Shown here piece after piece: positions 31,274-61,334 of a stretch of DNA of 64,000 nucleotides. Numbering within the stretch: position 1 is the first letter of the stretch; every line of letters begins with the position of its first letter. Below the pieces are notes generated by a model. That model did no database searches, was not told where the DNA came from, and saw only the letters and a program-made list of their open reading frames with translations. Origin of the DNA: Podarcis pityusensis (lineage: Eukaryota); assembly GCA_964106645.2 (NCBI GenBank), contig OZ067041.1, one strand, 5' to 3'. The position numbers and the translations under genes are program-made.

Positions 31274-31359
31274 ATGCTTTCTGCAACTCCCCTGTATGGC
31301 AACGTTCATAGCTGGATGAGCAATGAGAGAGTCCGCATGTGTGGGATTAACGAAGAGAG
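31274..31359 (+). CDS. BCOR: BCOR first coding exon (human exon 2 homologue); exon probably starts at 31229
   Basis: [28 protein letters not shown](R) matches the BCOR N-terminus; 86 nt; AG|GTAAAT donor; polypyrimidine tract with TAG acceptor at 31226-31228. Absent from the ORF track. Confidence 0.97.
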
Positions 31360-33007
31360 GTAAATATTTTAAGTTTCAGGAAAGTTAAACCACGCGGTGT
31401 TTCTGGAGAAGGGGGCTTCAGCGTTAATTTGTTAGCTTTCTTTTAATAGCTTGCATGGAGATAACTCATGGAGGGTGCTTTTATGAGACAAGAGTTGGAG
31501 AAGAGAGATGTTATGGGCGCAGACTCTCCCTTCGTGTACTGTTTTAACAATCAGTGTTGCTCAGGAAACCAGAAGGGGGCTTATAAAAGATTAGCTCCCA
31601 AAGTCACCTCTTCCTCACATATATTGCATACATTCTCTCCCAATCTTCAGTGTATTTACTGGAAAGCAAACGCCTGTGATTTTTAATGAAACTTATTTCA
31701 TGGCATGCGTGCTTAAGGTTGTCCCTGTAAGTTAATTATTTTATTATTTTTAGTTTATTATTTTTATTTGTGAAAAAGACAAGAACAACATGGATTCAGG
31801 TTTTTAATTTTAATTGGTCCGCATTACGTGGCCTGCAACTTAAGATAATTTGCCCAGCAATTAGATATTTCTATAACTTTCCATAAACTAGCACAAAGGT
31901 CAGAGTTTGGCCCCAGTTCAGAAACCATTCGTCATTCTTCATTGAAATGAATGGGGCAAGTTAGTCATGATTAATCTAAGCCACATTCGCTGCAACGAGA
32001 CTGAAGCAGGGCTAACTTTGGATTGGGGCCTTGTAAAAGCACACCAAATACAGTTTTTTAAAGAGACTTTACAAAATAGTGGACAATGCTATAATTCTTT
32101 ACTTCTAATTATTAAAATGAAGCAAGCACACTGCTTGTGTTTGCAAGTACTTTTGGTCAGAGTTGTGCGCTATAGAAAATAAAATCAGGACACCATCGGG
32201 TCATTTAATAACTTTCTCAGATAGTTTGAAAACAGCACACGAAAATTATGAGTTCCGAGACACTGAGGGGGAATGCCATGGCTGTGTATATTGTTATCAA
32301 ATGTCAAAGGAAGGAGGTGCACATGAGCAAAATGCTATTGTTCTGTTTCTATCCAATTGCATCCTGTGGCTATTCCAGTAGGTGTGGGTTGTAACAATAA
32401 TAGCTGGAAACAGGGCAAAAATGTGGGTGTTGCTTTTACTTTAAAAATTGATAGTGCCACCACTTTAAATATCCTTCTGGGTAATGATGAAACTTCCCTT
32501 CTGCTGTATGTCAGCAATTGTGTCCCTGGGATTTGAAAGTTGGCACTGAGGTGCATTCTTTTATCTGTGTTTTCTGTGATAACAAGTCCCTGAGCTGCTA
32601 CGCTGCTAACACACAGATGTATGGTTCCTTCTACAGCACTGAACAGCTGACATTTGTATGATATTAGAAGTGTGTGGGTTTTTCCTGTCTCTGTATATGT
32701 GTGTGTATGTACATATATATATATGTATATAAACGAAAATATACAGGGTTGTTTGTTTTTAAATAAATAAAGCGTATTTACCACCACGTATTGCTTTAGC
32801 AGAACTCCTTAACTGGAAATAAAGTCCAAAAACATTTTTTCATCCCTGAACTCTATAGAACCCAATTAGAGGGCAAATCTGTTGATTTTCTTCTGCACTG
32901 ATGTATTGATAAAGGTAATTTAATAGAAACACTGCAGTCAGATCAAAATGTCAAACAATTAACGTTGTGTCTGTAAGTCACTTTTTAAAAATATCTCTTG
33001 AAAATAG

Positions 33008-33086
33008 GAAAATCCCAGTTAATGATGGAGATGCTTCGAAAAGCAGGTTGGAATTAAGGGAAGAAAATCACCTGAACCACAGTGTG
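33008..33086 (+). CDS. BCOR: BCOR exon 3 homologue
   Basis: TAG|[27 protein letters not shown] |GTAAG; 79 nt; phase fits exons 2 and 4. Confidence 0.97.
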
Positions 33087-33607
33087 GTAAGAAACCGATA
33101 GTTCCGTTTGACGACAAAAGGTTTTTCACTGGATTTTTGTGCTATGGCTTCAGTTTCAAATAACTATTTGGGACTAATGAAAGTTGCTGTTAAACCAGAG
33201 GTGGCATTCAAATATCGGGTTACGGTTGCATCCTTTTGTATATATTTCTAGTATCTGAGTCTTAAGCATTTTTTTACTTCGTCATATGCTTAATAGCACA
33301 TCATGAACACTCTAAGTCATGATTGCTCTAAATAACATTGCTTGGCATATTTCAGTTAGCCTTTTGAGAATTTCAGTGACTGACAGCTGGTAGCCTTGGG
33401 TGGACAGAATGGGGTGTGTGAGCCTTTGCTATAGTTTCAGTGTCTAGAGAGGAAACACCTAAAGATGATCCTAAAGATGTCACAGACTTCTTGAAAGAAT
33501 GGTGGGATATAAATATAAGAAAATTGGAAGAACTAGAACTAGTACAATTTGCAGTTTAGGGCTGGCTGAGTGTTAGGAATGAGATTGGAGAGAAAGTGCC
33601 CCAGGGC

Positions 33608-33678
33608 CAATGCTTTTATTCTAGAAAAAAAGGGTGTTGGGGCTGCGTACCCCTGAGTACCCCCGGGAAAAAGCACTG
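33608..33678. mobile_element. 71 bp hAT-type MITE
   Basis: TIRs CAATGCTTTT / AAAAGCACTG with perfect 8 bp TSD CCCAGGGC (33600-33607, 33679-33686). Confidence 0.85.
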
Positions 33679-33842
33679 CCCAGGGCTGCTGTTTTTTCTT
33701 GGGGCTTAGAAGGACTGTGGAGGCAAGGCCTTTGTCTGCTTTCACTGTAGTGTTGTTTTGCTTCTTAGAATTGGGTAGCCTACTTTCTCTCATCTTGTGT
33801 AGGAGCAAACATTTGGAACAGAGGAGAGACCAGTGTTTCTGT

Positions 33843-33926
33843 TTCTTCTTCTTCTTCCTCCTCCTCCTATCCCCCTTCTTCTTCTTCTTCTTCTTCTTCC
33901 TCTTCCTCCTCTTCTTCTTCTTCTTC
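33843..33926. repeat. (CTT/CCT)n polypyrimidine microsatellite
   Basis: Direct reading; explains the poly-K/E/F/L ORFs here. Confidence 0.95.
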
Positions 33927-34082
33927 CAACTTATATACCACCCTATACCCAGAGGTCTCCTGTAATACAACTACATGACGCGATCTTGCTTTCTCCTTTC
34001 CCGCAAGCTCCTCTTTGTTCATATGAGGATGCTGGGAAAGGCAGTAGTTTAGCTCCTCTGCTGGCCTGTGAAAGTTATTAAC

Positions 34083-34170
34083 GCACAATGCTATATGTGT
34101 CTACTTGGAAGTCAGCCCCATTGAGTTCAGTGGGACTTTCTCCCAGGTAAGTATGTATAGGATTGCAGCC
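34083..34170. repeat. Best-preserved copy of the ~88 bp palindromic squamate repeat
   Basis: GCACAATGCTATAT...CCCCATTGAGTTCAGTGGGACT...CAGGTAAGTATGTATAGGATTGCAGCC; imperfect inverted symmetry; many diverged copies in the window. Confidence 0.8.
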
Positions 34171-34730
34171 TAAATATCACTTATTTTGGCTATCAATAAG
34201 CAGAGGAACAGAAGTAAAAAAAAAGACTCAGTGTCATTATTTGATTTAAATGATTTTTGGAATATAAATAACTTTGCATCTGAGGGTCCCCCCCCCCCCC
34301 CGGAAGCATACCTTATGAAATGTCCCTTGTTGGAAGCGAGTACACACATGGTTCTGGAAATCATTTTTTTTAAATGGGACAGTTGGTTGAGTAGCAAAGA
34401 TTTAAGGATATTATCCTAAAATCCATGTAGATGTTTTGCTAAGTATGAAAGGATCTAGAGACCTATTAAACTAATCTTACTTAAAAAATAATAATCAAAC
34501 TTGGCAAGACTCAGACTCCACAGACAGAAGAATGAAGCAGGCTAAAATTTTAAAATTTGATTTACTTTATTCCTCTGCATTTATCAGTTTAATCAGCCCA
34601 CATTAGTTTTTCACAATGAAAACAATGTATTTGCTTCCTTTTGTTTCCCACAATGTTTTTTTTTAAGTACCTGTAGTCTTGAATAGTACTTGACTAAATG
34701 CCAAAGTCACCTCTCTCTTATTTCACAAAG

Positions 34731-37535
34731 GTGGATGCCACAGCAGTGCATCGCATTGACAGCCTTGCAGCTCTGAGCATGGACCGGTCTGGACTTATGC
34801 GGGAAGGGCTTAGAGTCCCCAGCAGTATTGTCTATTCCAGTTTGTGTGGACTTGGCTCAGACAAGCCCCGGGACACTACAAGTGCTATTGCTGGCCTTGG
34901 ATTTGCTCCTGAAAGAAATCCAGAGATGCAGTTCAAGTCTAATCCCACTGAAGCAATTGAAAATGCAGCTGGAAAACCCCCAAATGGCTTCAGTGCTATG
35001 TACAAAACGCCACCTGGAATACAAAAAAGTTCGCTTCCGACTGGGGAGACCTTAGGCTTGGACAGAAGCTCAAGCGACAAACCGAGTCCTCTCAATGTCA
35101 ATGGTGCTAGTTACCTAAGGCTACCCTGGGTAAATCCTTACATGGAGGGTGCTATTTATCCTTTTCTCGAATCACCAAATAAGTATTCGTTGAACATGTA
35201 TAAGGCCTTGCTACCTCAGCAGTCCAATTACAGCTTGCCACAGCATCTGACCTACTCGCCCGTATGTACAAATGGTGAACGTTTTTTATACTTGCCACCT
35301 TCTCATTACGTTGCTCCCCACATTCCGTCATCGTTAGCTTCACCAATGAGGATCTCTGCTGCAACCGCAGCTCCAGCTATTCCCCCTCTAGGACACTGTC
35401 CAGAAAAGAGCTTGTCTTGGAAGATGGGAGTCGGTCCCGGAACTCCTGTGGACTCTCATGCCTATCCACATATCCAGAATAGCAAGCCTCCCAGGGTCCC
35501 TTCTGCAAAGCCAGCGGCTAGTAATATGCCAACAGACCCCACTGTTCTCTTGTCTCATTCACCGAGACCATCACCTAGAGTTCACCTCCCGACACAGGTT
35601 GGGGACGCTTACTCGGAGTTTCAGAAACACTTTTCCAGGATTTCGACATCTCCTTCTTCAGTTACACTCCCAAAGCCATACGTGAATGTAAGCAATGAGT
35701 TTCCTCCAAGAGTCTCCGGGGGGAAAGCTCCTAAAACACACGACACAGGCGAAATCTCTCAGCAGCCTACAGTGCATGCAAGGAAAACAGGTCACGACAG
35801 GAAGGACAGCAGATCCCCTCCACTGTTAGAAAAACAACAAACTGTTACCAAAGAGATTATAGACAAACCATTGGATTTGTCATCAAAAGTTGTTGACATG
35901 GAGACAACCAAATCTGATCATGTTAAGAAAATGGCGCCAACTGTGCTGGTTCATAGCAGGGCCGGAAGTGGCTTGGTTTTACCCGGAGGTGATCTTCCAA
36001 AAGAAACCATTTCTCCTGGAAGCGGTTGCCCTGTCTATAGACCTGAAATAATCAGCACGGCGCCTTCCTCCTGGGTTGTTCCTGGTCCAGGTCCCAATGA
36101 AGATAACGGTGGTAAAAACATGCAGTTGAAAAACAAAGCATTGGACTGGGTGACGCCACAACAACGGAGTTCTTCTTGCCCTAGGATGGGGGGTACAGAA
36201 GCAGTTGTCAGTAATATTTCAGGGTCTGTATCAAGCGGAGGTCGCCCAGCATCTGCTTCTCCTGCCCCAAATGCCAATGTCGATTGCCCTAAGACGACTA
36301 GCTCAGTAGAGACCACTGCATCTGTCATACAGCACATAGGACAACCTTTAGCAGCAGCATCTTCAAAGCATAGTAATAAGGCAGCTAAATGCAATAATCC
36401 AGAACCTATCTTCAAAGCAAATGAGAACACCCTTGCACCAACTTCCATATTTTTCCCTCCCAATGATGCATTCCGATCTCCACCATTGCCCTATCCAAGA
36501 AGCTATCTCCCATATCCAGTTCCAGAAGGCTTAGCTATAGGCCCTTTGTCTCTACATGGGAAAGGACCTGTATATCCTCACCCTGTTCTGTTACCCAATG
36601 GGAGTCTTTTCCCTGGACATCTAGCTCCCAAACCTACCATTCCATACAGCTTGCCAGCCAGCAGAGGTGAGTTCATGACCTACCAGGATGCTTTGGGTAT
36701 GGGTATGGTGCACCCAATGCTGTTACCCCATACAGCTTTGGAGCTGAAAGATGAGAAATCGGAAAGGAGGTCTAGATCGCATGAACGGCTCCGTTATGAA
36801 GACCCTGCCTTGAGAAACCGATTGCCTGAGATGCTGGAAACCAGCACAAAACTACATTTTGAAGTACCTGCAGACAGAAACACGAAATTGCACCAAAGTT
36901 CAAGTCATGGTAAAAATACTACCAAAAGTGACAAGCACCTGTTTGCAGAACCGAGAGAGGAGCAAGATGTGAAAGGTGAAACGAACCTGACGAAACCTAG
37001 CTTTCCTGTTGAAAGCAGTAATCAAGCAAGCGACCCCACAAAGCACAAGGTAGAACAAGGCTTCCCCCACAGAGATTTCATTGTGATGAGAGAAGACTGT
37101 GGGAGAAGCAATTTCCATGAAGTTTATAACTTCAAGCAAGCCCAGAGCCCACACCCATCGATGTTCAACTTAAGGAAAGAGGACCTTTCCTTAAGCCAGA
37201 ATAGGGAGAGGTTAACGGTTCCCACTTCCTCTGTGTTCTTGGAGGCTGCTCACGGAAACGATGGCCTAGCTATGTCCTTTTGCAAAATGCCAGATGATGC
37301 TAAACAGCTTTGTATGGGAAACACGCAGTCAAGTATGGAAGTCAGTCAGGCATACGCCAAAGAGGGAACTGAGGGCGCGGAACCTAATGATGGCAAATTC
37401 CTGAAACCTAAGCCATCTAACCTGGCAAAGAGAATCGCAAACTCTGCTGGTTACGTAGGTGATCGATTCAAGTGTGTTACGACAGAACTGTATGCAGATT
37501 CTAGCCAACTTAGTCGAGAACAGCGGGCTCTGCAG
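34731..37535 (+). CDS. BCOR: BCOR large exon 4 homologue (935 codons)
   Basis: AAG|[22 protein letters not shown]...[17 protein letters not shown]|GTGAG; 2805 nt open; PLDLS CtBP motif (35868-35882) and BCL6-binding peptide [17 protein letters not shown] (36039-36089). Confidence 0.99.
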
Positions 37536-38122
37536 GTGAGTTCTGAGGCTTAACTACCAAAGCAGTTTTTAAAAAAACACAGTTCACAGTTGAGAATGAA
37601 ATATGTACAACTCTATAAGTCTATCTTGAACTTAACTAGCAGTGGTAATCTTGTGTATATTTGGGTTCTGCTATGAAGCCAGGGGTATTGGAGCGTTAAT
37701 AGATAAGAATTATATGTAGTTAATTGGTGTAACAAATAATTTAATCTCATAAGCATAACATGTAGTAGTGAAAGGAAGCTGAAGAATGCATGACATGTTT
37801 GTTTTTAAAGGTAGTTTGCTATAGCTTGCCTGTGTTTGGCTAGCACTATTAAATACCAAGGGAAAGGCAGAGGTTCTGATGATTATTTCATACAGGACAT
37901 TTGATTAAAAAGGAGTAGCAGCCATATGTTAGCGGGTTTAATGCAACTTCTTTACCAAGCAGAAATGTAGCTTAAAGGAATAGAAGCTGTAGTGAATTTG
38001 ACGTTGAATGATGGCAAGTATTGTAGGTTATTTTTTAGATTTGTGAAAGAATTGAGTTAAGCCAAATTGTTTTGCGTTGTTAAAAAAAGAAAGAATTAGT
38101 TGATGCTTATAAAAATGGATGA

Positions 38123-38270
38123 NNNNNNNNNNNNNNNNNNNNNNNNNNNNNNNNNNNNNNNNNNNNNNNNNNNNNNNNNNNNNNNNNNNNNNNNNNNNNN
38201 NNNNNNNNNNNNNNNNNNNNNNNNNNNNNNNNNNNNNNNNNNNNNNNNNNNNNNNNNNNNNNNNNNNNNN
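38123..38270. other. Assembly gap (148 N), probable location of BCOR exon 5
   Basis: N run; the first bases after it (TGAGTT) complete a GTGAGT donor; no exon 5 homologue elsewhere between exons 4 and 6. Confidence 0.8.
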
Positions 38271-38652
38271 TGAGTTAAAATTTCATTTCCAAGTACACAA
38301 AGGGAAGTTGTGGGCCATGGTCATCTTTATTCATTGTACAGTTTATGTTTTGTTTCTTTGTTATACCTCTCAAAAGACAATGCTTTTTAATACACATATA
38401 TAAATAAATATATATATATAATGTTATTTACTTTTATATATGGAAGAACTGTATATCATTTGTGCATAGATACTACATGCCTTGCATATTGAACACATGG
38501 CATTTTAAAACTTTATATAGAATTGCGTGTATCTCAAAACTTTGGGTTTGAGCAGATATTTTCTTTCGGAAATACTTTTCATAGAAGGTAAGGTAAATGA
38601 AGTAGCTCTTATTGTGAGGTGTCTTTCTTCCCCATATCAATTCTCTTTCTAG

Positions 38653-38836
38653 CGTGCAATGATGCGCTTCTCAGAGTTGGAGATGAAAGAGAGAGAAGGC
38701 CACGTAGCAACCAAAGACCCGGAGGTCTGCAGATTCAACCAAGCAGACTGGGAAAACTTGAAAGGAAATAATGAAAAGAAACCTAAGTCTGTCACTTTGG
38801 AAGATGCCATTGCTGGGCAAAATGACAATGACAGAT
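38653..38836 (+). CDS. BCOR: BCOR exon 6 homologue
   Basis: TAG|[26 protein letters not shown]...[21 protein letters not shown]|GTAAGC; 184 nt, phase 0 to 1. Confidence 0.97.
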
Positions 38837-38918
38837 GTAAGCAAAGTTTTTATATGCCTTTTTGAAATTTCTGTGTGCCTCCTGTAGTCATTTAGAGCAA
38901 AACATGGCAATGCCATTA

Positions 38919-39143
38919 CAGTGGTACCTCGGGTTACATACGCTTCAGGTTACAGGCTCCGTTAACCCAGAAATATTACCTCGGGTTAAGAACTTTGCTT
39001 CAGGATGAGAACAGGACACTGTGGCGGTGGTGCGGCAGCAGCAGGAGGCCCCATTAGCTAAAGTGGTGCTTCAGGTTAAGAACAGTTTCAGGTTAAGAAC
39101 GGACCTCCGGAACTAATTAAGTACTTAATCCGAGGTACCACTG
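38919..39143. mobile_element. Tc1/mariner-type MITE, copy 3
   Basis: TA|CAGTGGTACCTCGG...CCGAGGTACCACTG|TA. Confidence 0.92.
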
Positions 39144-39203
39144 TACGTAGATGTTAAAGCATTCAGCTCCAAAAAGCTGCTGCACAGTCATAGCAATACC
39201 TAC

Positions 39204-39299
39204 TGGGTGATATACAACATTAGTCATAGAGTAGACCATTTGATAACAGTAGATGTCAGTGGGTCTTCTCTGAATATGACTAATGTTGCATATCGCCCA
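39204..39299. repeat. 96 bp palindromic element (25 bp arms, 23/25 match)
   Basis: TGGGTGATATACAACATTAGTCATA ... TATGACTAATGTTGCATATCGCCCA; probably a foldback MITE. Confidence 0.8.
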
Positions 39300-41141
39300 C
39301 TAAGTTTCCCTTGACAAGAAGTGAAAACAAGTTTCTTTCATGTAAACATTTGTCAACTGCAGCTCGTCGTTTGTGTAGCTTAAAAGTTGCGTCGGTCTTA
39401 GTGTGGGTTCTCTGTTGTCTTAAGCAGGGAGAAAGGAAGACAGGTAATGGGAGGGTTGAGCTAAGTCATATAATCAGAAAACCTTCCATTTAGTTATTTG
39501 AAGTGTGTGAACGTTAACATTGTGTGTGTCTTGTTGCTTTTTTTGCAGAAAGCCACTGCAATGTGGTGATCTGTATTGTGTAGTAGAAGCCTGCCCTCTC
39601 CCTCCATATCAGCAAACTGTTCTGTGCACAAATTTTCCATTCATAGGCTTGTCAACTTCCATCAGACCAGTAAAGAATAAAACTATGCCATGAATCAACA
39701 GGGCCAGCTGGTGTGGCAGCACCGTAGTTCTGAACTCCTGCCAGCACTGCTGCTTGCTGCTTGCTGCTTACTAGGGTGATGTGGGAGCTGGGCAGTGGTG
39801 ACGCCAACGCAGCCTGGCCATATTGGTGGAGCCAATCTAGTGCCCCAACAGCTGCCCATTACCTTTTAAAATTGGGGGTGATTTGTTCTTGATTTTGGCT
39901 GTATTCTTCCCACCATTAGAATGGAAGAAGTACCTGCTAATTTCTAATGATTTCAGCAGCAGTAAGTGTGCAATGAACAAAAAGATTGGAGGGTTTGTCG
40001 CTTCAGTGTATCTAAACCTCTTCAGATGTGAGAACCTATTACTTCTCCCTTTCCACAAACTTGCTAATAGAAAAATGGGTGTTCTTTAGAGTGTGTGTAA
40101 CTTTGTGGGGGCGGGTCTGCCATGGCTGGTAAACTGAGTCAATAAGAGATGTTAATTACAAGTTGCTATCCCATAATAGGTTGGCCACAAATTCATATAT
40201 TCATCTATAAAATCCAGATCTACAGGCAATGATTTGCGTGCTTCCAATTGACGTGCAACCTCGCATTGCAGTGACCTGAAAGTGCCTGGGGAAAGGGGGC
40301 AGGCAGGAACGTAACCCCTGTGTAAACCAGTTGTTGCCTGTATTTGATAAACACTGTTAATCCAGCATAGAACAAGGTTGGGGAGCACTTGGCTGGTCTA
40401 AGACTCTTGAAGAGAGTCTTCTCTTCTCAGCTGTGCTCAGCAGAGTTCAGGTAGTTGAAGAATGCATCCTAGGCTTCCTTCTGAACCTGGAGACCTGATG
40501 CCCCATTCTGCTTGCTCCTCCTCCTCCGTTTTGTGGCTTCCTTCAGTTTCAGTAAATGCTTGTGCTTCAGTGCACTCCCCATGAGCCCTGAAAACTCAAA
40601 AGTCCTGTTCAGTTAAAAGGAAAGCAGTTGCAGGCTGTCTATTCCCCCAGCTGATACAGTGGGTGGAGGGGCAATTCATACACATCCTCATCAAGCAGTA
40701 GGGTGAAGGGAAGAGCTGTCTTTTTGAAAGGCAGCTGGAGCCCAAGAAACTAATGGTGTGAGGAAGGAAGGGAAGGGCAAATCAGGGTGTGAATAAAAGA
40801 AGGAAGGACACAAAAAGGTCTCTCAACATGGAGGTTGATTGGGTGCATATCATGCTGCGGGGGAGGCAAACATCTGTTTTGTGAAGGGAGCACCATGTTG
40901 CTGTGATCCTGCGGGTGCAGATGTGAGGACGAATTCTGTTGGAATGGGTTATCTAGGAACACAATTCAGGTTATTTACTCCACTGCAACTGTTCTTGTAT
41001 GCATGCAAGTGTCAAGTTTTATGTAAGATTGAGCGTAACTTGACACTTTACGTTATCCAGCAGTGGCATTTTTTTCTTCCAAGTTGACATTTACTCCCTG
41101 CTATGATGCCTCATTCTTCAAGGCACCATTGTTTCAAAGGC

Positions 41142-41221
41142 ACTGAAATCTTTGGGATGTTGTTGTTACTAAAATTATTTTTTATTATTGACAACACCAA
41201 CAACATCTCAAAGATTTCAGT
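41142..41221. repeat. 80 bp inverted repeat (24 bp arms)
   Basis: ACTGAAATCTTTGGGATGTTGTTG / CAACAACATCTCAAAGATTTCAGT, one mismatch (G-U pair in + strand RNA). Confidence 0.9.
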
Positions 41222-41914
41222 AGTTGCTATTACTATTATTATTTATTATTGAGTGGTTTCTCTAAAAAAAAGGAGTGGCCAAAACAAAATCAGAGTGGAA
41301 TTCAAACTCAATGAACACCAGGCAGTATAAACAGTTTTTATAGCCTGCCTAAAACTAGGGAATGAGTGCCACAAATAGGATGCACCAATCTAGGCTCTCT
41401 GGAGGATGGAACGTACAACAGGGTCCCTGAAAATGAAAATGGGCATTGTATGTTTTCTGTTATTTTCATTTGCTTTTGCAAAAGGTGAGAGGGGTGGAGT
41501 ATCTGCACTTTTAGGTTTGCTGAACTAACAGGATTTTATCAGTTCTTTAAAATTTGCAGTATTTAGAACACCTGTGTGAAAGAAACAAATAGTTGATAAA
41601 ATTGATTACACTATGTCTTGGAGCCAGATTACATATTGCTGTTGCCAGGGGATTGGCATCCTGTGGCAAGGTTTTCATTTCCTGCGGCTATTAGATTCAG
41701 ATGTACTCACTGCATCAATCAGGGCCATCAGGAGAATTTCCCTGCTTCTGCTCCACGCAATTGGTGGCCATTGAAGGGGGAGGGGCAGGACAACTCACTA
41801 CCTGATTATCTTGATGCACATAGTAAATACTATCAAATGTTATCTCTGCAGGGAGGCAAAGGTGCCATAGGGTTGTTGATCCCCACAGTGACTGTCCTAT
41901 ATAGCTCGGTTCTT

Positions 41915-42682
41915 TCTTCTTCTTCTTCTTTTTTTCTTTTTTTTTTTAATAAGTTTTTATTGTTAAAATAGTTCATCATTAATACACATATACAAGCATA
42001 CAAACATACATTTCATACAATCCTTAAAAGTGTTCAAACATACTTACACTCAATCCCACAAATAATTCCTTTCCCCATCACCATCCACCACCCCTCACCC
42101 CACCTTTGTGTTTGACTTCCTATCTACTCAATTACAATTTCTTTCCACTTCTATTACTTTCTTTCACACACCTTTAGCCTAATTTCATACTTCTTTTTCT
42201 ATTACACATTGTTGTCCATCTTATTTGATATTTCAGTATTTGAAACGGAACTTGTTTATTCTAATAGGAGTTCTGATTTTTTGATATGATTTTGCAAGTA
42301 TCTTTTAAACACCTTCCAGTCCCTATCTATCTTTTCTTTTGAAATCCTTCCAATTTCTTCCATTGTTTTGGATATATTGTACTACTCCAAAAATTTGGCA
42401 AGCCACTCTGTTTTTGTCGGTATTATACCACTTTTCCAGTTTTTCGCAATCAATAGCCTTGCTGCTACTGTTGCGTATAAATATAAGGTCTTATCTTCTT
42501 CCTTTAGGCTTCCTGGTACTATTCCCAATAGAAAACCTTCTGGTGTTTTCCTAAATGAGTATCTAAACATTTTTTTCATTTCATTATATATTATTTCCCA
42601 AAATTGTTTGATGTTTAAACAATTCCACCATATATGTATCATAGTACCTTTTCCCGTGTTGCATCGCCAGCAGACATCGCTA
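41915..42682 (-). mobile_element. 5'-truncated L1 LINE (ORF2 C-terminal CCHC knuckle, 3' UTR, A-rich tail)
   Basis: Minus-strand CWRCNTGKGTMIHIWWNC...AARLLIAKNWK; AATAAA and A-tail near 41930-41962; 10 bp TSD CTCGGTTCTT at 41905-41914 and 42683-42692. Confidence 0.9.
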
Positions 42683-42891
42683 CTCGGTTCTTAACTTCCA
42701 TGTAATGTGATTAACTTCAAGTTACTTTGACGTGGCAGTTTGTGATTTTTGTTTATGTGTGGACTGATAAGGTGTTTACAAAATAAAAGTTTTGTGCACA
42801 TCACAGGGCTTAGCTTTGCAAAAAAGTTTCGACACACAAAGGCTGGAATCTTGTCAATTCTGTTCTGCTTAGGCCTTAGGGAATAGACATA

Positions 42892-48175: not shown

Positions 48176-48542
48176 AAGGTAAAGGTAAAGGTACCCCTGA
48201 CCATTAGGTCCAGTCGTGAACGACTCTGAGGTTGCAGCGCTCATCTCGTTCTATAAGCCGAGGGAGCCGGCGTTTGTCCGCAGACAGCTTCCGGGTCATG
48301 TGGCTGGCATGACTAAGCTGCTTCTGGCGAAACAAGAGCAGTGCACAGAAACACTGTTTATCATCCTGCTGGAGTGGTACCTATTTATCTACTTGCACTT
48401 TGACATGCTTTCGAACTGCTAGGTGGGCAGGAGCTGGGACCGAACAACGGGAGCTCACCCTGTCGTGGGGATTCAAACCGCCGACCTTCTGATTGGCAAG
48501 CTCTAGGCTCTGTGGTTTAGACCACAGCGTCACCCACGTCCC
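48176..48542 (-). mobile_element. Sauria SINE, full length
   Basis: (AAAGGT)n = reverse (ACCTTT)n tail; tRNA-related head GGGACGTGGGTGACGCTGTGGTCTAAACC on the minus strand; near-TSD TTCGCATATACTTAA / TTCACGTATACTTAA. Confidence 0.92.
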
Positions 48543-49892: not shown

Positions 49893-51914
49893 CTCTAGAG
49901 TCATATTTCAGGTTTACTTATAATCTTCAAAACAAGGACTTTTCTCTGGGCTAGCAACATCCCAATCCTCTAAATATTTGCAAGAAGCTTGCTAGTATTC
50001 ACTAATGAAGCTTTATACAAAATTAGAGCGAATGCTTTCTTCCAGCACCCAGTCAATAGAGCATCAAATAATAAAGACTATGAAACACCACCAGTCAAGT
50101 CTTTATACCAGAGGAAAAATAAGTTGTAGTATTTTCCTTCTTTCCAAGTTTGCAAATCCAAACGTTTTGTAGATTTGATCCAGTGTTGTGTGCCTTGCTA
50201 ATCATTTTTGAATGCAAACAAATTTCTATACCTCATTTTCTTCATTATCTGTAAGAGATCATCTATTTCAGCAAAATCACACATGCTAAAATAGGAAGTC
50301 TCATGTGTGTCATATTGAGATATACACCCCCTTTAAAAAAAAAATCACACTAAGAACCACCTAGAACTCTGTTAAGGGAAACACCTGTTTAGATTGCTGG
50401 TCATCATGAGTTCATCAAAGCTAATGTTTGGAGCATGATATTGTTCTCTTCACCCTATAATCTCAATACATGTTGAACCCGTCCTATAAACCAGTCCCAG
50501 GCAAAACTTGTTTCAATGTAACTAAAAATATTATGATAGGAGGGTAACCTAGTCCTATTAATCTGCTGTCAGTTTTATCTGCATGTAAATCTAACTCATA
50601 AACTAAATATTGTGTAGATTCTTGTGCTTTGACATCATCAAGTTTCAGTGTAAAAGAGCTGCTCCTGTAAATTGGCTCAGTTTAACCCTCACTGTTTTAT
50701 AATCTTCCTTTGCTGGGTTTCAAAACTCATTTCAGTCTGCTTTTTGAAGTAGCAGGTGTCAGGCAAACTTTTAAGAAGGGGGCTGATGGAAGGAGAAGAT
50801 AAGGCAGGCAGCAAAATGGAAGAGGAGGAAGTTAAGCGGGTGATAAGATTGATGGGATAAATTAGAGGAGGAATGTGCGGGAGGGTGGGAACAAAGGAGA
50901 CCAGAGGCAGATACATGAGAAGAGGGCTCCGGCTGCATCCTTTAAAAAATCCTTATCTACAGAGAAAGATAATGTGGGAAGGGCAAAGAAGCTTTAACAG
51001 GATTGCACAGGGGAAAAAAAAGTTTTAAAAATTTAAAAATTCAAGGTTCAAGGCGTGGGATCCTCCTTATGCATTGTTGATATACAACTTTGATTTTTTT
51101 AGGTCTAGTTCAGAAATGTTTGTCTGTTGGTTGAAGACTGTGGTTTTTGTTATATTGTATATATCCTTGACTAAGGTTAAGCATAACCTTGAGGATACAA
51201 AATGTCAGCCAGGTTTTCAAGGCCTGCTGCACAAAAGGAGGAAAGTTGTAGACTTTTTGAAGACGAGTGGCATTGCAATATGTTAACTGCACTACTAAAT
51301 CCCTGAATACGTGGATACTGGTGGTGTCATAGGTCAGAGAGGGCCACCTTCAGCGTCAGCCTAATTTCATGCAGGTTGCAGGGGCAGGAAGCAGAGAGAG
51401 TGAGCAAATCAGATTGGCCCTTCTCACTTTTCACTCTGGCCCTCAGTATGTGGCCCCTGATTAATTACTCTCCAGGGAACGTAACTCTCAACAGAAAAGG
51501 GTTTCCCATCCCTGCAATAAGTGTTTCCAGCAGTTCAGGTTATGGTGTATCGTCACACGTCTTTCATTCCCTGGGTTTGCAAATTTGACTTGGAGCTGCT
51601 AGAATTAATTCATGACAACTGGTTATTTTGCATCATGAGAAAAACAATATTTTGCATCATACCTACTTTTCCTAGTGAAATACCAGCAATATTAGTGTAT
51701 GTCTAGTTTTCCTGTTGGTCCTTGATGTAATAATATTCATCCTTACCAAAATCCATAGTTGTGTCTAAACTTTTTCATCTACTTTGTAAATTCTCTTTAC
51801 AAGCACGTACTTGGTGCTACAATTGCTCTGAAGAGATGGAAGCAATTGCGCAAGATGCTCGTTGAGTTAGTGATGTGGTAATCCTTTCTGTTTTTTGTTT
51901 TGTTTTAAATGAAG

Positions 51915-52193
51915 GTGATTTTCATAATACAGAGAGCACCCAGGACCACGGTTTTGAAGTTCCTGAGGAGAAAGGTCCTCCAGCAGACAGTTGTGTGGAG
52001 AGACTTACTGTATATGAAAAGGCCAGCGACCAGTCCGCAGAAGATGTCAACCAGGCCCTGTGCCCCCACCAGGACAGGAAGCGTAAACATTCTGGTGAGA
52101 AAATGCAGAACGATGGAAGCCTTAAAGAAAACTTTGTAGAGGAGCAGGAAGATGAATTTGCATCAAAAGCAAAAAAGAGGAAGAACTCCAAAG
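51915..52193 (+). CDS. BCOR: BCOR exon 7 homologue
   Basis: AAG|(C)DFHNTESTQDHGFEVPEEK...DRKRKHSG...KAKKRKNSK G|GTAAC; 279 nt, phase 1-1; basic NLS-like clusters. Confidence 0.93.
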
Positions 52194-52525
52194 GTAACCC
52201 GGCCAAGTTGGTCACTCTTTAAGGCATGGCTTGTGAAGTGAACACTCTTTGGATTAACCTATGTCCATTTATGACCTGTGTTGTGCCAATCCCAAATCCT
52301 CGCCTGAATTATGTTTGGGTACCTACAAGGTACAAGAATAGTCATTGGACAACGTAATCTTTGGCCAATGCAAATTGCTGTAGTGCATGCAAACCCCTCC
52401 TGAGCTAATCTTTTAAAAATGCATAGTGTGGTGGTGAAGCTGAAACAATCTGCCCCACAAGTGAACTATAGCTTTTGTTTCAAGTTGAGGGCCTTTTGAT
52501 TAATTTTTAGTTATTTTTCCATTAG

Positions 52526-52879
52526 ATGACTGGCCTGAGAGGGAAATGACAAACAATTCCTCTAACCACTTAGAAGAGCCCAATTGTAATGAGGTGACCA
52601 ACCTGAAGGTGTGCATTGAATTAACAGGGCTCCATCCCAAAAAGCAGCGTCACCTGCAGCATCTTAGGGAACTGTGGGAGCAGCAGGTGTCACCAGAGAG
52701 ATCCCCACCCGGCAAGTTGGGCCGGCAAAGCAGGAAAGATTTAGCTGAGGCTGTTCAGCCAGAGGCCACTGCAAAGGTCAAAGACTGCACAGAAGAAAGG
52801 CACACCAAGAAAAGGTCAGAGGTCAAAAGCAATAGAAGTTGGTCTGAAGAGTCCCTCAAAACAAGTGACAATGAACAAG
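52526..52879 (+). CDS. BCOR: BCOR exon 8 homologue (long form including 8a)
   Basis: TAG|(D)[18 protein letters not shown]...[19 protein letters not shown]...[16 protein letters not shown]|GTATG; 354 nt; AF9-binding LKVCIEL; internal acceptor at 52628. Confidence 0.97.
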
Positions 52880-54607
52880 GTATGCAGAGATTACTAGGGA
52901 AATCTAGCATTACTTAGTGACGCATGCTGCCACCAGTGCTAAGAAGCTGTCAGTAGTTTTTTGGGTAGAAGTTTTATATTATATTATATATAATATAAAA
53001 TTTTACTATGACCATATAAAGGACTTAAAGTGCCACTATTAAACCACTTATGCTTGTTTTGCCAAATCTGTAGTGTGTGGTGCTAATTGTGTTTTAATGC
53101 CACATCCTAGATGTGTGTGCTGTCTGTGTCGTGTGATTCCCTCCCCGCTTCAAATTGGGGGGGGGGGGGCGGGGGCGGGGAAGAGAATACCAAAACCCTA
53201 AAATATTTTTGTCTGTAGGTTCTTTTTGGTCATTTTTGCTTTTTGATATTCTTAACAGTTTTTGACTTCATAACAGTCCCCCCCCCTCAACTTTACCAGT
53301 CAGGAATGATTTTGATTTCATAACAATTTTTGACACGTATGAATGAGTGTAGATTAAGGAAGATAGTATGAAGAGTACTGCGTCTTTTAACCACTTGTGG
53401 GAATTCACTGCTCCATTAGGTTTGAACTTCTGAGTTAATTTTTCCCTGCTCTGGAAAGCTGGAGGGAAGAAAGAGGCCTCCTTGTGTTCCATTCTCTTTA
53501 TGCCAGGAAAGGTGCACAGGTGTCTTTCCCCAAATCTTTTCTGCTTTGTGGTTAAATGCAGACTAGCTGAGTTCTTCTACCTAGCCTGCTTTACCACTTC
53601 TTTCTTCTCTTTCCTAATTAGTCGTCGTCACTTTTGTATATACTGCATCTTCTACACATAGATTGTACTGAAAGCCAGTTCACAGGAAATAAAATGACAA
53701 TTTAAATATAACGACAAGCAACGTAGCTGTCACACACAATAAAAATCTATAGAAACCCACTATAACATTGAAATATAAGATTTCATCTCCAACTGGGAGC
53801 AGGTCTTTGGGAAAGAGCTTCTGAGGGTCAAATTATATGTTATGTTAAATTCTTGTTTAACCCTTTCTCCTTGCACTGTTGTTCTGACTAATATCACTCC
53901 TCAGAGCTGCTATAGGTACCAACAGCAGGTTCCCTGTAAGAGCAAATAGCAGCTGGAGAAGGGAGGGATTTTAATCAGGACCGTGGTGCAGGGGGAAAGG
54001 GTCAATGCCCTTCCCATGTGCTGTACTCCAGATCACAGCTGCTGTGTCTTAAAATAAAAACAAAACCTGAAACATATTAAATCAAATCATGCATTTAATG
54101 TAACACATAGTTTGGCCTCTACCATTTCAGACCGTGATAGGCAGAGTTTTGGTTTTTTGTTTTTATATGGGAGAAAATTCTGTTACTGAGAGCAGAGATC
54201 TGAATCGTTGAACGTTCTCCCATACAAAAAGACTCCCTGCGCCCGGAAAGCAATCATATGGAAAATGAGCCTTCTTTGCAACATGCTAGTTTTCCAGGTA
54301 TGGGGATATTTATTTATTTTGGAACAGAGGAACATTGAAGTGCAAGTCCCTACTTCCTGCCTGAAAAGTCCAGCCACAAGTTTCACCCTGGTGAAAACTA
54401 GGCCTAAGTCTACAACAGCTAGAGGATTCACCACTTTCTTATATGTTTTTTAAAAAGTTTTTTTAAGACAAGAGAGAGAATCCTTCATTAGATAGACAGA
54501 TCAGACTCATGAGTCAAGCCCTTGGTTTCTATTCCATTCAGACATTGCTTGATCTTACAGAAACAGAATTTAAGAAACCTTGATCTGATGCACTGTGAAT
54601 TCAGATA

Positions 54608-54812
54608 CAGTCATACCTTGAGTTGAATGCACTTCGTGTTACTTCCGGGTTTTGCCGCTCGCGCATGCACAGACGCTCAAAATGACATCACGTGCATGCG
54701 CGGTAGCGGCAAAACGCAACACACGCAGATGCGCCGTCACGTCTTTTGTGTTCCATTCAGGATGCGAACGGGGCTCCGGAACGGATCCCGTTCGCATCCC
54801 GGGGTACCACTA
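54608..54812. mobile_element. Tc1/mariner-type MITE
   Basis: TA|CAGTCATACCTTG...GGGGTACCACTA|TA; CpG-rich interior suggests a relatively young copy. Confidence 0.8.
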
Positions 54813-55845
54813 TATTGTTCTTACTCTAAAACCACAGCTAGTCATTCATTTTTATTCATTTCAGTTGTTCTGTTGGTCCCTTTGGGGTTCTGAAGAAGTT
54901 TAGTTCTGATTCCTCTTACCTGAAAATTGTCATGTAAACAAACTCATCATGAACCTCTTTGCTTTCTTTACATTTCCTTCATGTCTTAGGGAATCCTTTT
55001 CTCTCTTCAGGCATGGTCAGTAGAATGTTACAAAAGTGGAATGAACATTGAAGCTATGAGAAATGCATTGTTGGTATTTTAGAGAAGCTGAAAAGGTCAC
55101 TTAGGGTCAATATATCCTGTTTCTGTACACGACATCCTTGCAAAAGGCAACTCTTGAAAGTTAGGTCCTTGCAATGCAGCAAACAGGAGAGACAGCTGCT
55201 TAATGGTTAAGAGCCATAGAACACTGAGAAATTGCTGTTTGGATCTATGAATCCCTTTTCAGAATGCTGCAAGAAACAGACCCAATGCTTTCCTCATTTT
55301 TGGTGTACAAAGGGAGACTTTTTCAAAGGCAGAAATGGGAATTGGGCACTCAACCAGCGTTTCTGATTATGGAAACCGTTTCTGTGTCCTTTGAATTTTA
55401 CACTCCACTCTGCTCTACAAAAAGCAAAAATGGGTTTCCTGAGGTGGAAAGGTTTCAGCAGTTCTATACCTGAAAGAGCAGTATATTCCCACTTTGCTAG
55501 CATGTCATTACAGGTAAGGAAGCCTCTTCTCTCATCTGCATCCATATAAACAAGTACACTGAGAAGGAGGCCTGATTCATATCTACTTTGCCACGATGCT
55601 TAGATGGTGCAGTGCTAGACTGTGTGGTTGTTTACTGTGCTTAGATCTCGGAACAGCAAACTTTGTTTAGCAGATGTACCCACCCATTACAATTACTTTT
55701 TATCGCTTATAGTCCAAATGTGGAATTGCTTAATGCAAATGTAAAAGTTTTAAAATAATGTGTCATGTGTTAGGTGTGTGTGTGTGTGTGTTCTCTTTCC
55801 TTTCAACACACTATGCAATGTATGATGCCTTTCCTCCCCATTTAG

Positions 55846-56174
55846 GTATCCCTCCATTCCCAGCATCTCCGCACATGAAGACCCTTTCATCTACAAATAT
55901 AAACAGCAAAAGGCAAGCCCAGCCAAGCTGTACTCCAGTTTCAAGGTTGGCTGCCAAGCAGCAGAAAATTAAAGAAAACTGGAAGACAGATGTGCTGTGC
56001 ACAGACGAGGAAGAAGATTTTCAAGCTGCATCCCTGCTGCAGAAACATGGCGACTGTGAGAAGCCACCAGGGAAACGTCAGTGTAAAACAAAACATTTGG
56101 CACTGCAGGAAAGGAGAAGGAGGTCATCCCTGACAGGAGATGATGTCACTGATCTCGAAAGTGCTGAGGAGAAG
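55846..56174 (+). CDS. BCOR: BCOR exon 9 homologue
   Basis: TAG|(G)[16 protein letters not shown]...[29 protein letters not shown]...KRQCKTKHL...AEEK|GTATCT; 329 nt, phase 1 to 0. Confidence 0.93.
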
Positions 56175-56520
56175 GTATCTTTATTCCAACCCAGTTGTCC
56201 CACTAATATTTCAGGTTTGGCTAATATCAGCCACTTTAAACGCTTAGCTTGTTGTCTTATGTAGTGGCCCTTCCAAGCCCTTTCTGTTTACTTTAAAACA
56301 CATTGTATTGTTCTGCAGTGCTCAATCCACTTTACTCCAGGACACATCTGTGAGGGCTCCTCAGATTCTTTCAGGATTTTGATCTTAAAACTTTTAGAGG
56401 GTATAAATCTAGAAGCCGACACTACTACACTTTTAAAAAGAGAGAGAAAGGAAAATGGATTTTCAATGAATTATTAAGGATGGATGGGTGGGGTGTGGAA
56501 TCCAGTAATGATTTTGACAG

Positions 56521-56795
56521 GTCATAGTTAATGAGGAGAATCTGGAAGCGACCAGAGGCTCCTTCAGACTGTGACTCTTCACCAGTCAAATCACATGAGC
56601 AGGCATTGTACAATCGCCTGCAGCAGCAGAGTCCCTCATTATTGCCTGTCTCTTCAGCCCTCACAGCTGCAGATTGCAAGTGCCCCTCAGGAGACTCCCC
56701 CAAGTCGTCCCATGCCGCCAGAAGCCCGAAGGCTTATTGTCAATAAGAATGCTGGAGAAACTCTTCTGCAAAGGGCAGCCCGACTGGGATACGAG
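56521..56795 (+). pseudogene. BCOR: Frameshifted BCOR exon 10 homologue
   Basis: Homology spread over three frames: VIV / [19 protein letters not shown]...LLPVS / [47 protein letters not shown]; 275 nt (not a multiple of 3); GC donor. Confidence 0.88.
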
Positions 56796-58339
56796 GCAAG
56801 CATTGTTTCTGAAGTTCACTACTCTGAATTACAATGTGGAAGATGCTTGGTGTCACACATAATTCTAACTGTGCACGTGGTTGGAGTCTCTCTTTGTGTT
56901 CCTTCTCAACATGTCGAAATATCTCCAGGCTCTCTGTTCTGTTTCTTTATTCAAGCGTGCAATTAGTATATTTTGTGAGAAGGGCTAGGAAAGAAACAAT
57001 ATAAACCCCTGTAAGTTAATAACCTTGAGCCTGAATAGGCGCCAGTCATTTTCAATAAGAAGTCAGTTCTTGATGTGCTTTGCAGGATGGGGATCGTGAG
57101 TAAGTAGTGGGGGATGGGGATAGATACCCCGATACACAGCCAAAGTTAACATATATGCTACATTTCAGGAAGGTTAATTACCGGCACAGCTTTGGCAGTG
57201 TGAGAGTGTGGACACGCTTCATTTCAGGGCTGCTTTTGAACTTCACATTTTAATGTTATGAATATATATTTTGTGGTGCATTCCCATATTTGAAAAACAA
57301 ACTGGCATTTAGAGCTGGTAAATCACTGGGACTTACAGACTTCAGGTGAAAATAGTCATATGTACAAATAGTTTGGAGATCAGACTTATTAGCAAAGCAG
57401 CTCTATAGGTGCCTATGTCTTTGGGTTTATTTTCCTTTCTACATTTTTAGACATTGCTTGTAAGAATGCTGCCATCCTTAAAATGCTATATATAGAGAGA
57501 GAAAGAGGGCGGGGGATGAGTCCTGACGAATCCTTCTGTTAATTTTGTTTTATGGAAAGGTTTTGTTTACTTCTACCTGTAGCAATAAAATATGAGGTCT
57601 TCAAAAGCAGGGGTGTGGACTGGGGAACTGGTGCCCTCCATATGTTGCTGGACTCCAGCTCCCATAAACCGCAGGGATGATGGGAATGACTTGCTTCCAG
57701 TGGTGGTTATAGAGCTTAGTCAAGCACAAGTCAATCAGAACTTTACCTGTTCTGATCCTTAATCAAGAAGCAGTCAATTTGCTGTACCCCTTTTCCTTGA
57801 TGAAAAAGAGAAGAGAATCAGTTCAGTATGTTGAAGCCTGTGTTGAGGGGCTAGATAGCAATGTGGCAACTGAAATACGGGTAGTGGTGATATATTTAAC
57901 TTCTTGTGTGGTAGGGCAATGTGGCATCTTGTATATGGGAAAAGTCCAGTGATTAAAGTCACAACAGACAATTTCATTCTCCACCGCATCATGGAGCACT
58001 TTCTAGTCTTGTTGTGTTGGATGAGTTTCAGTTAGCAAGACTTATGGACATGGACAAGGTGCTTGACTTGGTTTGGGCAACTACTTCTGCTCTTCTTCCT
58101 TGATGCTCATGGTTTTTTAAAACGGCACGGTTGACCACATCAGAGAGGTGATTAAAGCCTCCTTGCAAGAGGGGGTGGGCCCCCCACCTGTCAAAAGGAG
58201 ATAGTGTTAAGACCACTCCTTAAGAAACACTCTGTGGATTCAGAAAATCTAAATAGAAATTGGTCAGTCACTAATGTTTCCTTCTTGGGCAAGGTTCTTG
58301 TGGGGTTGCAGGACAGATCTTGGGTATCCTGGGTGAAAC

Positions 58340-58820
58340 CAATCTTTTAGTTCCATTTCAGTTGGGATGTAGGCTTGCTTTGGGTGACCCTGTTAGGAGA
58401 GAGACAGAAGAGTGTGTTCCTGTTGCCGCTAATTTATTTCTCAAGGGCTTTTGACACCATTGGTCATTCTATGCTTCTGGAATGACTGTCTGAGCTGGGG
58501 TTAGGTAGCACCACTACCAATCTGACTTGGATGGTTGTTTTCAGAGGGTGGCGTGTGCTGGTTTTGACCTATGTGGCTTTGACCTATGTGGCTCAGCACC
58601 CCAATTCCTCAAGGGCCTCTTCTTCCCACATGAAGGAACCCAGACCCTACTCTGTGTGACCTCCTGTGGGAGGTGTGGAGGGTGAAAACAGGAGAAGGAG
58701 CCTTTTCCATGGTGGCCCCTCTCCCCTGTAAGTGGAGTGCTCTCTCCAGGGAGGCACACCAGTGCCTGTTTCTAGGTACCAGGCAGAGCCATTCTTATTC
58801 ACCTAGGCCTTGGGATCTTA
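58340..58820 (+). mobile_element. Highly degenerate L2 LINE fragments
   Basis: GCTTTTGACACCATTGGTCAT (AFDTIxH RT motif) near 58447 and L2 3'-end-like GGAGCCTTTTCCATGGTGGCCCC near 58698. Confidence 0.55.
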
Positions 58821-61247
58821 ATTTTAGCAGGGTGTGGTGGATCTGGAGCTGTTTTTATGTATGTTAGTTGTGTCTGCTGAGTGCCGATGGGGTGTGTTGG
58901 AACAGAATAGAAAAGGAATGGTTGGCTGACTAGGAGCACTCCCATGCTGCAGCATTTTGTTGCAGGACCCACTTGTCTCTGTAGGATCTATAGGTGTTAG
59001 TAGTGGAGACAGTTCTGAACCTCTGTTCTTCAGCCACATTGGGCTTCTGAGGATGGACATTGAGCACGAACAACAAGAGTTCAGCGCCACCTTATTTATA
59101 TATGTAACAACATTTTACATGAGACGCCCTTGGAAACGTTCTGCTTTTATAGCTACCACATGCCACTGGGAATCTTGCCTCTGACTTTGACGAGGTGTCC
59201 CATAGCTTAATTAATTCAAACTGTATTCCACGAGGCTTCAAGGAAAACAAATAAGGACAGTGCTGAAGGCCCTTTCCAGAGTAAACAGCGGCAAATACCA
59301 GATTAAAACTCCTCCTGAAACAGCTGTACTGAATGCACAGTTTGACGGGGAAAGGGAGAGGCATTCCTAGGTGGTACTCTCTGTGTCTTGACTTGGAGAT
59401 ATCAGTTACATGTCTCCTTTTCCTTCATCATGTCTGCTCAGGGCCAAACGAGATGTGATTGTTTCAGCTCAGTTTTGTGTATTGAAACACTCTGTAGGAG
59501 GAGGATTTTAATAGCAATGTGAGTGTAGTAGGTTGGGTGCCGACTCCACTATGTACCTATTGCTTACCTCTTCATGGACCTTCTCTCCAGAAGCTTTTTG
59601 CTTGGTTGTGTTTCAGAGCTTGGCTGTGGGGCTGGGGCGGGCAAGAGATGCGCCGTAATACCCAGATCACCAACTTTCATTAAGGAAAAAAAGAAAAAGA
59701 AAGTTTATGGCACTTTTAGAACCCAAGCTGTGAAGCAAAATGTGCAGCCCAATTGTGGAAACTCTAGAGAAGAAACACCCTTGCTTGCTTTTCACTTTTC
59801 CACCTTTTATTCTGGTCTTCCCTGGTGGAGAAGGGGTTGCTGCCCTATAGAAAACAATGCGTTTATTCAGGATTCGTGTGTAGCTGTGATTGGGGAATAA
59901 AGTGTTGTTGCACTTATTTTGGAGGGATTTTGTGTAGTGCACGTCAACCCTCAAATGTTGTCCAGTGCTATCCTGGTGTGTGCGGTTTATTTTTTTAGAG
60001 AGAGATGCAGCTGGCAGGGAGGGATGTGAAATTGATTATAGCAGCAGTGCCATTCATGAAGGGCTAGAGGTGTGTGAAAGGAGCAGGGAAAGAATTGCAG
60101 GTTTCAGCATTGAGTGGAAAGATGTTGCCTAGAAGAAAGTCGGATGTATAAATTGAAAAACAACAGAGAAATAGACCTGGAGCCCAATTTTCCCAGAGGC
60201 CATATCTACCCAGGTCTCTTTGCCACTACTCAGTCAACAGATCTAGTTTGATGCTAGCTATGTTTTATTTATTTCTTTGGAGTAATAAATTAACACTCTC
60301 CCCCCCGCCTCCCGCCCATCACCTTGCAGATGTGTAGGCAGAAGTTAATGGCAGATAAGCCATAGGTGAGGGAAAGTCTCTACTCAACACCTGTACATTG
60401 CTTTAAAGTCAGGCATGCACACTCTTTTCTCTCTCTGAGATTTGGACAGTTTACGTGTTTACAACATGCACAACCGTTGTCAGGACTAGATTGGCCCTGC
60501 ACTGGTGTGCAGCTGGCAACCTTTCAAATGACCTCTCTCATGTGACAGGCATAATCAGCTGAAATGCTGTAGTCCGTAAGACAGCCAGAAAAGTGTCTCA
60601 GACCCACAATACAACAAAGTTTTGAGATTTGTTTGTTGACAAACTTGTTTTCTTCATCTCTTAAATATAAATTGACAGGGAATATATTATCTTGAGGGAT
60701 GTTAAAATAACTTGTTTTTTTGTGGTGGTTTTTGTATGACCTTTCTAGTTTTTTGTTGTTGTTTTTTAAAATAAAATTTCTCACCCAAGTGTGTGCTCTC
60801 AACATTTTCCCTCTGTTATTGTACAGGAACATGCTAAAAAAGTCAGTTAATTTGGGAGCGGTGGTGAGGGGTGTGTGTGCATTGTGGATAGGGTTGTAGA
60901 CAGGAAATCCGAGGTTTTCTTCATGGTTTCCCCAGAGGAATGGGGTTTTGCTGGTAGAATGCATTGCAGGCCTCAGCCTAGGAAAGTCTGTTGGCTGCCA
61001 TGATACTTTGGCTGCGAGGGATATTTGCTCATAGGCGTTGCGTTTCCAAATGCCCTTCTTATCTGACTGCTTTATAGAAGGACTCCCCCTGGAACATTCC
61101 TCTTCTCTTCCCCCTCCCCAATTGAAACACTTCCCAGATGAATTGCGCCCCTCCCTCCTGTTTTCTTTAAGTGATAACCTCTGGTGTTAAAGATATCTCC
61201 ATAGCAACAAACAGTTTCTTTTCTCCACCCTTCCTGCCTTTCTCCAG

Positions 61248-61334
61248 GAAGTGGTTCTGCATTGTTTGGAAAACAAGGTCTGTGATGTAAATCACTATGA
61301 CAGGGCTGGCTGTTGCGTTGTAAAGAGACTTTAG
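61248..61334 (+). pseudogene. BCOR: Degenerate, truncated BCOR exon 11 homologue (ankyrin repeat)
   Basis: Strong acceptor TTTCTCCAG| then [24 protein letters not shown] (human [24 protein letters not shown]); homology stops ~61319, TAG at 61332-61334; the LHEACARGW...AQDGTR half is absent. Confidence 0.88.

Follow-up and report, generated by a model that had tools for sequence, protein, structure and literature searches.

The window analysed here is a 64,000-nt stretch of one strand from the wall lizard Podarcis pityusensis (GenBank assembly GCA_964106645.2, contig OZ067041.1), in which positions are counted from the first letter. It holds, on the plus strand, eight coding exons of the corepressor gene BCOR (exons 2 to 4 and 6 to 10). 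BCOR joins the Polycomb complex PRC1.1 through its PUFD domain, and its isoforms differ in AF9 binding (PMC13703134). A preliminary description of this DNA had presented the gene as an amputated, PRC1.1-uncoupled BCOR or a half-dead duplicate. This headline did not survive: 1,418 codons are open, and congeners have the full-length protein. With a probability of about 0.95, the locus is an ordinary full-length Podarcis wall-lizard BCOR, and its apparent truncation is an artefact of the window edge.

Coding exons of BCOR in the window

Exons were compared one by one with Podarcis BCOR proteins, and their concatenation, with exon 5 omitted, served as a local frame check. The coding part of exon 2, from the ATG (31274-31359), is identical to Podarcis BCOR over 28 of 28 residues, and exon 3 (33008-33086), which has AG and GT ends, over 26 of 26. 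Exon 4 (34731-37535; 935 codons, 2,805 nt) lies in an open reading frame at 34698-37553 that matched Podarcis BCOR at 99-100% in a sequence search, and all of its 935 residues are those of P. lilfordi X1. Then come exon 6 (38653-38836, 61/61 residues identical), exon 7 (51915-52193, 91/92 against P. lilfordi and 92/92 against P. raffonei), exon 8 (52526-52879, 117/117), exon 9 (55846-56174, 109/109) and a functional exon 10 with a GC donor (56658-56795, 46 codons), which agrees with lacertids at 46 of 46 residues. Exons 8 and 9 carry PF15808, with Pfam scores above the cut-off.

Taken together, the eight exons differ from P. lilfordi X1 (CAI5772414.1; 1,711 residues, with PF15808, ankyrin repeats and PUFD recognised by Pfam) at one residue in 1,418, located in exon 7. 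Over the same exons P. muralis differs at 5 positions and P. raffonei at 10, and the exon-wise comparison with Podarcis proteins found no exon with an excess of amino-acid change. Existing annotation gives P. lilfordi, P. muralis and P. raffonei each a full-length BCOR protein, and the window from 29,300 to 64,000 is collinear with the P. raffonei locus at 95-98% identity.

Exons 2-4 and 6-9 join into 1,372 stop-free codons, which reproduces exactly the count first reported for this DNA; the 2.8 kb stop-free exon mentioned there is exon 4. When exon 10 is added from 56658, the frame is stop-free over 1,418 codons. Across these 1,418 codons no frame-breaking lesion was found in the spliced exons; the lesions sit in skipped sequence. 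The three interaction motifs said to be kept are indeed all present, namely PLDLS (35868) and the BCL6-binding peptide (36045-36089) in exon 4, and the AF9-binding LKVCIEL (52603) in exon 8. The point made about CtBP is weaker than stated, a review having assigned CtBP binding via PXDLS to BCORL1, not BCOR (PMC13703134).

A run of 148 N (38123-38270) with collinear flanks occupies part of the intronic sequence between exons 4 and 6. The spacing of these flanks is 148 nt in P. raffonei, P. muralis and Rhineura, against 141 nt in Sceloporus and Gekko; the exact length match suggests that the run is a mask rather than a true gap. The exon 5 of P. raffonei maps within the matching interval, as does exon 5 of the other species just named. 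As the end of exon 4 and the start of exon 6 are both in phase 0, the reading frame holds with or without exon 5.

Exon 10, its disused extension and a partial copy of exon 11

Exon 10 is intact, and squamates splice to its downstream acceptor at 56658. The 137 nt immediately before it (56521-56657, plus strand) form a disused 5' extension of the exon, now intron, in which the old acceptor is kept. Squamate proteins displayed, gecko and snake included, all pass straight from the end of exon 9 to the sequence at 56658. In the same display, proteins of turtle, alligator, bird and marsupial carry about 44 extra residues at this joint, and in turtles both exon-10 forms are annotated as isoforms, with acceptors 44 codons apart. 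Alignment of the extension with turtle shows two single-base insertions and one extra codon, common to Podarcis and Gekko. Read in frame with exon 9, it reaches a stop at codon 18, and at codon 18 or earlier over the genera compared; in the rattlesnake (Crotalus) it is interrupted by an insertion of about 360 nt. Since the extension is spliced out, the two frameshifts earlier attributed to exon 10 are real letters in a present-day intron, and the exon proper is unbroken.

This splicing was examined in RNA-like contigs from three runs of three studies. They come from a related species that differs at 4-5 positions in exons 9-10, are only guessed to be RNA, and, as contigs, lose rare isoforms. 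In all three studies, exon 9 is found spliced from 56174 to 56658, with 483 nt skipped between GT..AG ends and zero depth at 56400-56599. Past exon 10, the contigs fit the piece that begins at 61248 over 49 letters, up to 61294, the point at which true exon 11 diverges from it. One of them (2,107 nt) extends 1,639 nt beyond exon 10, which leaves room for exons 11-15 and a 3' untranslated region. The preliminary description had named transcripts joined to intact exons outside the window as evidence against a truncated protein, and RNA-like contigs of a close relative carry such joints.

The letters themselves were checked with a further run, X16, which is large and of unrecorded type; it was taken as DNA from its size and a 0.99 share of words, and may be the window's own sample. 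Its contigs reproduce 55800-61790 without a single difference or gap, at a depth of 21-30. Assembly error behind the frameshifts was rejected on account of this exact match and by other squamates having the same frameshifts. A second X16 contig (depth about 22) overlaps at 61345-61351 with small insertions.

Two further observations concern the ends of exon 10. The 5' end of intron 10 (56796-56801) is GC, making a GC-AG intron, in squamates and turtle, and GT in bird. In Sceloporus (locus L004, 23590-23800) and in Anolis proteins, the acceptor of the short exon 10 has moved another 9 nt downstream, its AG having changed to AA.

What had been described as a degenerate, cut-off exon 11 is a partial duplicate of this exon within intron 10 (61193-61315, plus strand), joining some 55 nt of intronic to some 68 nt of exonic sequence, with 78% identity to the true exon 11 region. 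The piece does diverge, and its match does end at about 61315, but it is not exon 11. It holds about 68 of the 167 nt of exon 11 and has no donor. If its acceptor at 61248 were used, an in-frame stop (61332-61334) would follow after 28 codons. The copy is present in all six squamate loci checked (P. raffonei, P. muralis, Rhineura, Sceloporus, Gekko and Crotalus) and absent from those of Pelodiscus (turtle) and Lagopus (bird), where true exon 11 stands alone. Acceptor and pyrimidine tract are kept in seven of seven squamate sequences, and the stop, at codon 29, in three of five genera (Podarcis, Rhineura and Gekko). Inclusion of the copy was seen in none of the RNA-like contigs of the three runs, which drop rare variants; a single unspliced contig covers it, at depth 2.8. 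Its sequence follows exon 10 in 0 of 243 BCOR-family proteins, and no conserved strong donor or poly(A) signal was found at the copy.

The copy is enclosed in a conserved block (61145-61400, plus strand) in which 70-nt windows reach 97% identity to Gekko and Sceloporus, in a region matched overall at 21-25%. Two more conserved non-coding blocks of intron 10, at 62613-62827 and 63766-64000, precede exon 11 in turtle and bird. Since they lie 3' of the copy here, the copy is the derived one of the two and intron 10 continues at base 64,000. A further conserved non-coding block of this intron is found at 59152-59375. In Rhineura, exons 10 and 11 are separated in isoforms X1, X2 and X4 by another exon, of 21 residues (locus L002, 35509-35574), that is unrelated to the copy.

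Intact exon 11, followed by exons 12-15, lies downstream of the copy in P. raffonei, P. muralis, Rhineura, Sceloporus, Gekko and Crotalus. The distance from copy to true exon 11 is 2.3-6.6 kb in the five loci measured, and 4.6 kb in P. muralis. Projected onto window coordinates, true exon 11 would start at 65.9-67.9 kb and the stop would fall at 76.7-77.4 kb; in P. lilfordi, the gene range on record (45,738 nt) has its end at window position 77,011. Comparison with congeners thus places exons 11-15 of this assembly, in all probability, just past base 64,000. Nothing recognisable as exons 12-15, nor any second copy of them, was found in the 64-kb window, as reported before; the cause is not loss, but that the window ends 2.7 kb past the piece at 61248. 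Ankyrin repeats and PUFD are encoded by exons 10-15, of which exon 10 alone lies within the window; both occur in the P. lilfordi protein, which is almost identical, and in the congeners with collinear loci.

Elsewhere in the window, GC-rich stretches (52-59%) 5' of the ATG, at 8000-12000 and 20000-30000, are probably alternative BCOR promoters and non-coding first exons. A young retrotransposon copy of about 770 nt sits in intron 6 on the minus strand (41915-42682). Neither P. raffonei nor P. muralis has this insertion; it shows a 10-nt target duplication and an A-rich tail, and its broken reading frame resembles the cysteine-rich end of a LINE-1-type ORF2. A reverse-transcriptase-like repeat fragment lies at 5670-6250 (minus strand), and short interspersed elements at 48179-48534, 57630-57670 and 58000-58300 draw many contigs.

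Conservation of the two leftovers

The exon-10 extension and the exon-11 copy, hereafter the leftovers, are both more conserved than expected of discarded sequence evolving like fourfold sites. Against gecko, 69 of 72 positions of the copy and 111 of 120 of the extension are identical (93-96%), compared with 354 of 477 fourfold sites (74%; Fisher, P = 8e-6 for the copy and 4e-6 for the extension). In the surroundings, 21% of the bases of intron 10 align to gecko. The apparent decay is neither recent nor limited to this lineage, both pieces being common to gecko, iguanian and amphisbaenian. Fourfold sites are themselves unevenly conserved against gecko, at 41/42 in exon 8, 24/25 in exon 10 and 23/24 in exon 11, and at 63-71% in exons 4, 12 and 15. 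Exon 8 (52526-52879) is near-invariant DNA across squamates and turtle (39 of 41 fourfold sites shared with Pelodiscus), and is a candidate synonymous constraint element on an alternatively spliced exon.

Substitutions in the copy comprise about ten non-synonymous and one synonymous change, and a 1-nt insertion in Sceloporus. Such mostly non-synonymous change, together with the insertion, means that the constraint on the copy is not at the peptide level. Three more specific proposals for the copy were rejected. An in-frame 72-nt cassette ending at 61319 would depend on a weak donor, changed and shifted in Sceloporus, and occurs in no protein. Gene conversion as the source of conservation is contradicted by fixed differences from the true exon, among them a lysine codon as in turtle and bird, and by the copy not tracking a snake-specific change of the true exon. 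A mutually exclusive duplicated exon does not fit a partial copy devoid of donor and of a protein-coding substitution pattern.

RNA structure was also considered. A candidate hairpin starts with the base that follows the old exon-10 acceptor (56521-56575, plus strand), with z of about -4 in Podarcis, Sceloporus and Gekko; by the fold prediction, it could hide this acceptor. Rhineura and Crotalus have lost it, it was picked after the fact, and its covariation is nil (0 pairs changed on both sides; 93.5% paired, versus 92.9% shuffled). Long-range pairing among the copy, exon 10 and true exon 11 was not better than in shuffles, and the fold of the copy itself (z -1.1 to -1.8, covariation term unfavourable) was not retained.

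The simplest reading suggested by these comparisons is that exons 10 and 11 may carry a non-coding signal retained by the leftovers. As to its nature, we tentatively put splicing control via decoy or unproductive acceptors at somewhat short of an even chance, and a DNA enhancer overlapping exons 10 and 11 at a little lower; other possible reasons share what likelihood is left.

A full-length gene and its alternatives

According to the proposed scheme, the gene would encode a full-length corepressor, about 1,711 residues long, in which ankyrin repeats and PUFD are both present. Splicing would lead from exon 9 to the acceptor at 56658, exit by the GC donor, and run past the copy at 61.2 kb to true exon 11 beyond 64,000. 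A squamate ancestor would have lost the frame of the long exon-10 form and gained the partial exon-11 copy, and both leftovers would have been kept under constraint for a non-coding reason.

Several points weigh against this account. The window ends at 64,000, and exons 11-15, ankyrin repeats and PUFD of this assembly are placed by projection. The RNA-like runs come from another species, with an RNA label that is a guess, and their contigs lose rare isoforms. Finally, the fourfold baseline is mostly exon 4, and exons 8, 10 and 11 are themselves near-invariant at such sites, so that the leftovers may merely share an older constraint.

The alternative that fares best, although we hold it to be unlikely, keeps the full-length gene and makes of the exon-11 copy, perhaps also of the old exon-10 acceptor, a regulated unproductive or terminal exon. 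Splicing to 61248 in some tissues would reach a stop after 28 codons, so that the message decays or yields a protein of about 1,464 residues that lacks PUFD. The retention of acceptor and pyrimidine tract in seven squamate sequences, the 69 of 72 identities with gecko, the stop kept in Podarcis, Rhineura and Gekko, and the fixed differences from the true exon, which speak against gene conversion, all go in this direction, and human BCOR does have a truncated isoform through alternative processing (PMC13703134). Yet the copy is in no spliced contig and in none of the 243 BCOR-family proteins, it has no conserved strong donor or poly(A) signal, and it has accumulated some ten non-synonymous changes for one synonymous, plus the Sceloporus insertion. 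Extended back to the squamate stem, this becomes the proposal, just as doubtful on present sequence comparisons, that a decoy, poison or terminal exon might, with the old exon-10 acceptor, tune the dose of PRC1.1-competent BCOR or give a minor PUFD-less isoform.

There is only a slim chance that the leftovers are neutral relics whose surroundings evolve slowly. Ultraconserved elements abound in BCOR (PMC13513235), and in the rattlesnake both pieces are more diverged, the extension being split by its insertion of about 360 nt; most of intron 10, however, cannot be aligned to gecko (21% matched), whereas the leftover blocks stand at 93-97%. A partial duplicate gene or an assembly chimera, both put forward earlier, might have been suspected from the N run, and either is very improbable given the 35 kb collinear with P. 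raffonei, the exact 148-nt spacing across that run, the X16 contigs without difference and the lack of any exon with excess amino-acid change. Almost no credit is left for a lineage-specific truncated BCOR acting as a BCL6/AF9 adaptor without Polycomb, its main product devoid of ankyrins and PUFD: its sole support is that exons 11-15 are not visible in the window, while three congeners are annotated with full-length proteins, relatives with identical "lesions" have intact exons 11-15 downstream, and RNA-like contigs run into true exon 11. The model first proposed that comes closest to the full-length gene favoured here is that of dead duplicated exons skipped toward functional downstream exons; it holds for exon 11, and fails for exon 10, which is functional through its downstream acceptor.

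The full-length gene compares directly with its squamate orthologues (P. lilfordi CAI5772414.1, P. raffonei XP_053242890.1), which have the same exon 2-10 protein, exon-10 acceptor and intron-10 layout; the window gene differs by one exon-7 residue and by having exons 11-15 outside the window. In turtle, alternative exon-10 acceptors give isoforms 44 residues apart (1,762 versus 1,718 in Pelodiscus), and the downstream site is the squamate one, whereas the squamate long form is frameshifted and absent from the proteins and contigs examined. The tandem, mutually exclusive exons 5a/5b of SCN-alpha genes (PMC12772994) likewise involve an old exon copy in the neighbouring intron; unlike them, the BCOR copy is partial, without donor or coding pattern, and seen included in no contig.

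High conservation, an intact acceptor and an early stop also recall the conserved poison exons and unproductive acceptors coupled to nonsense-mediated decay, such as that of SF3B3 (PMC11162794); in contrast, the BCOR leftovers are known here from sequence, with no inclusion in contigs. The same source mentions a concealed-branch-site structure in BCOR. With exonic enhancers and synonymous constraint elements (PMC3371700, PMC13216554), the likeness is in the near-invariant synonymous sites of exons 8, 10 and 11, the leftovers deriving from 10 and 11; unlike those cases, an enhancer role in BCOR is putative here. We found no paper on squamate BCOR splicing, the 44-residue loss or the exon-11 copy. 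The squamate loss of the long exon-10 form and the conserved partial exon-11 copy are a minor new case of known kinds, in a gene already annotated in congeners.

The claim of a vertebrate with a Polycomb-uncoupled BCOR is false, and the main value of this analysis is to close that lead. It also exposes a trap: held against a mammal-type exon model where a window ends, an intact gene can pass for a dead one. For squamates, it shows 44 residues lost directly before the ankyrin repeats, plus a conserved non-coding part-copy of exon 11. These leftovers are natural cases of coding sequence without a protein role and yet constrained, and they could help to locate a regulatory signal overlapping BCOR exons 10 and 11.

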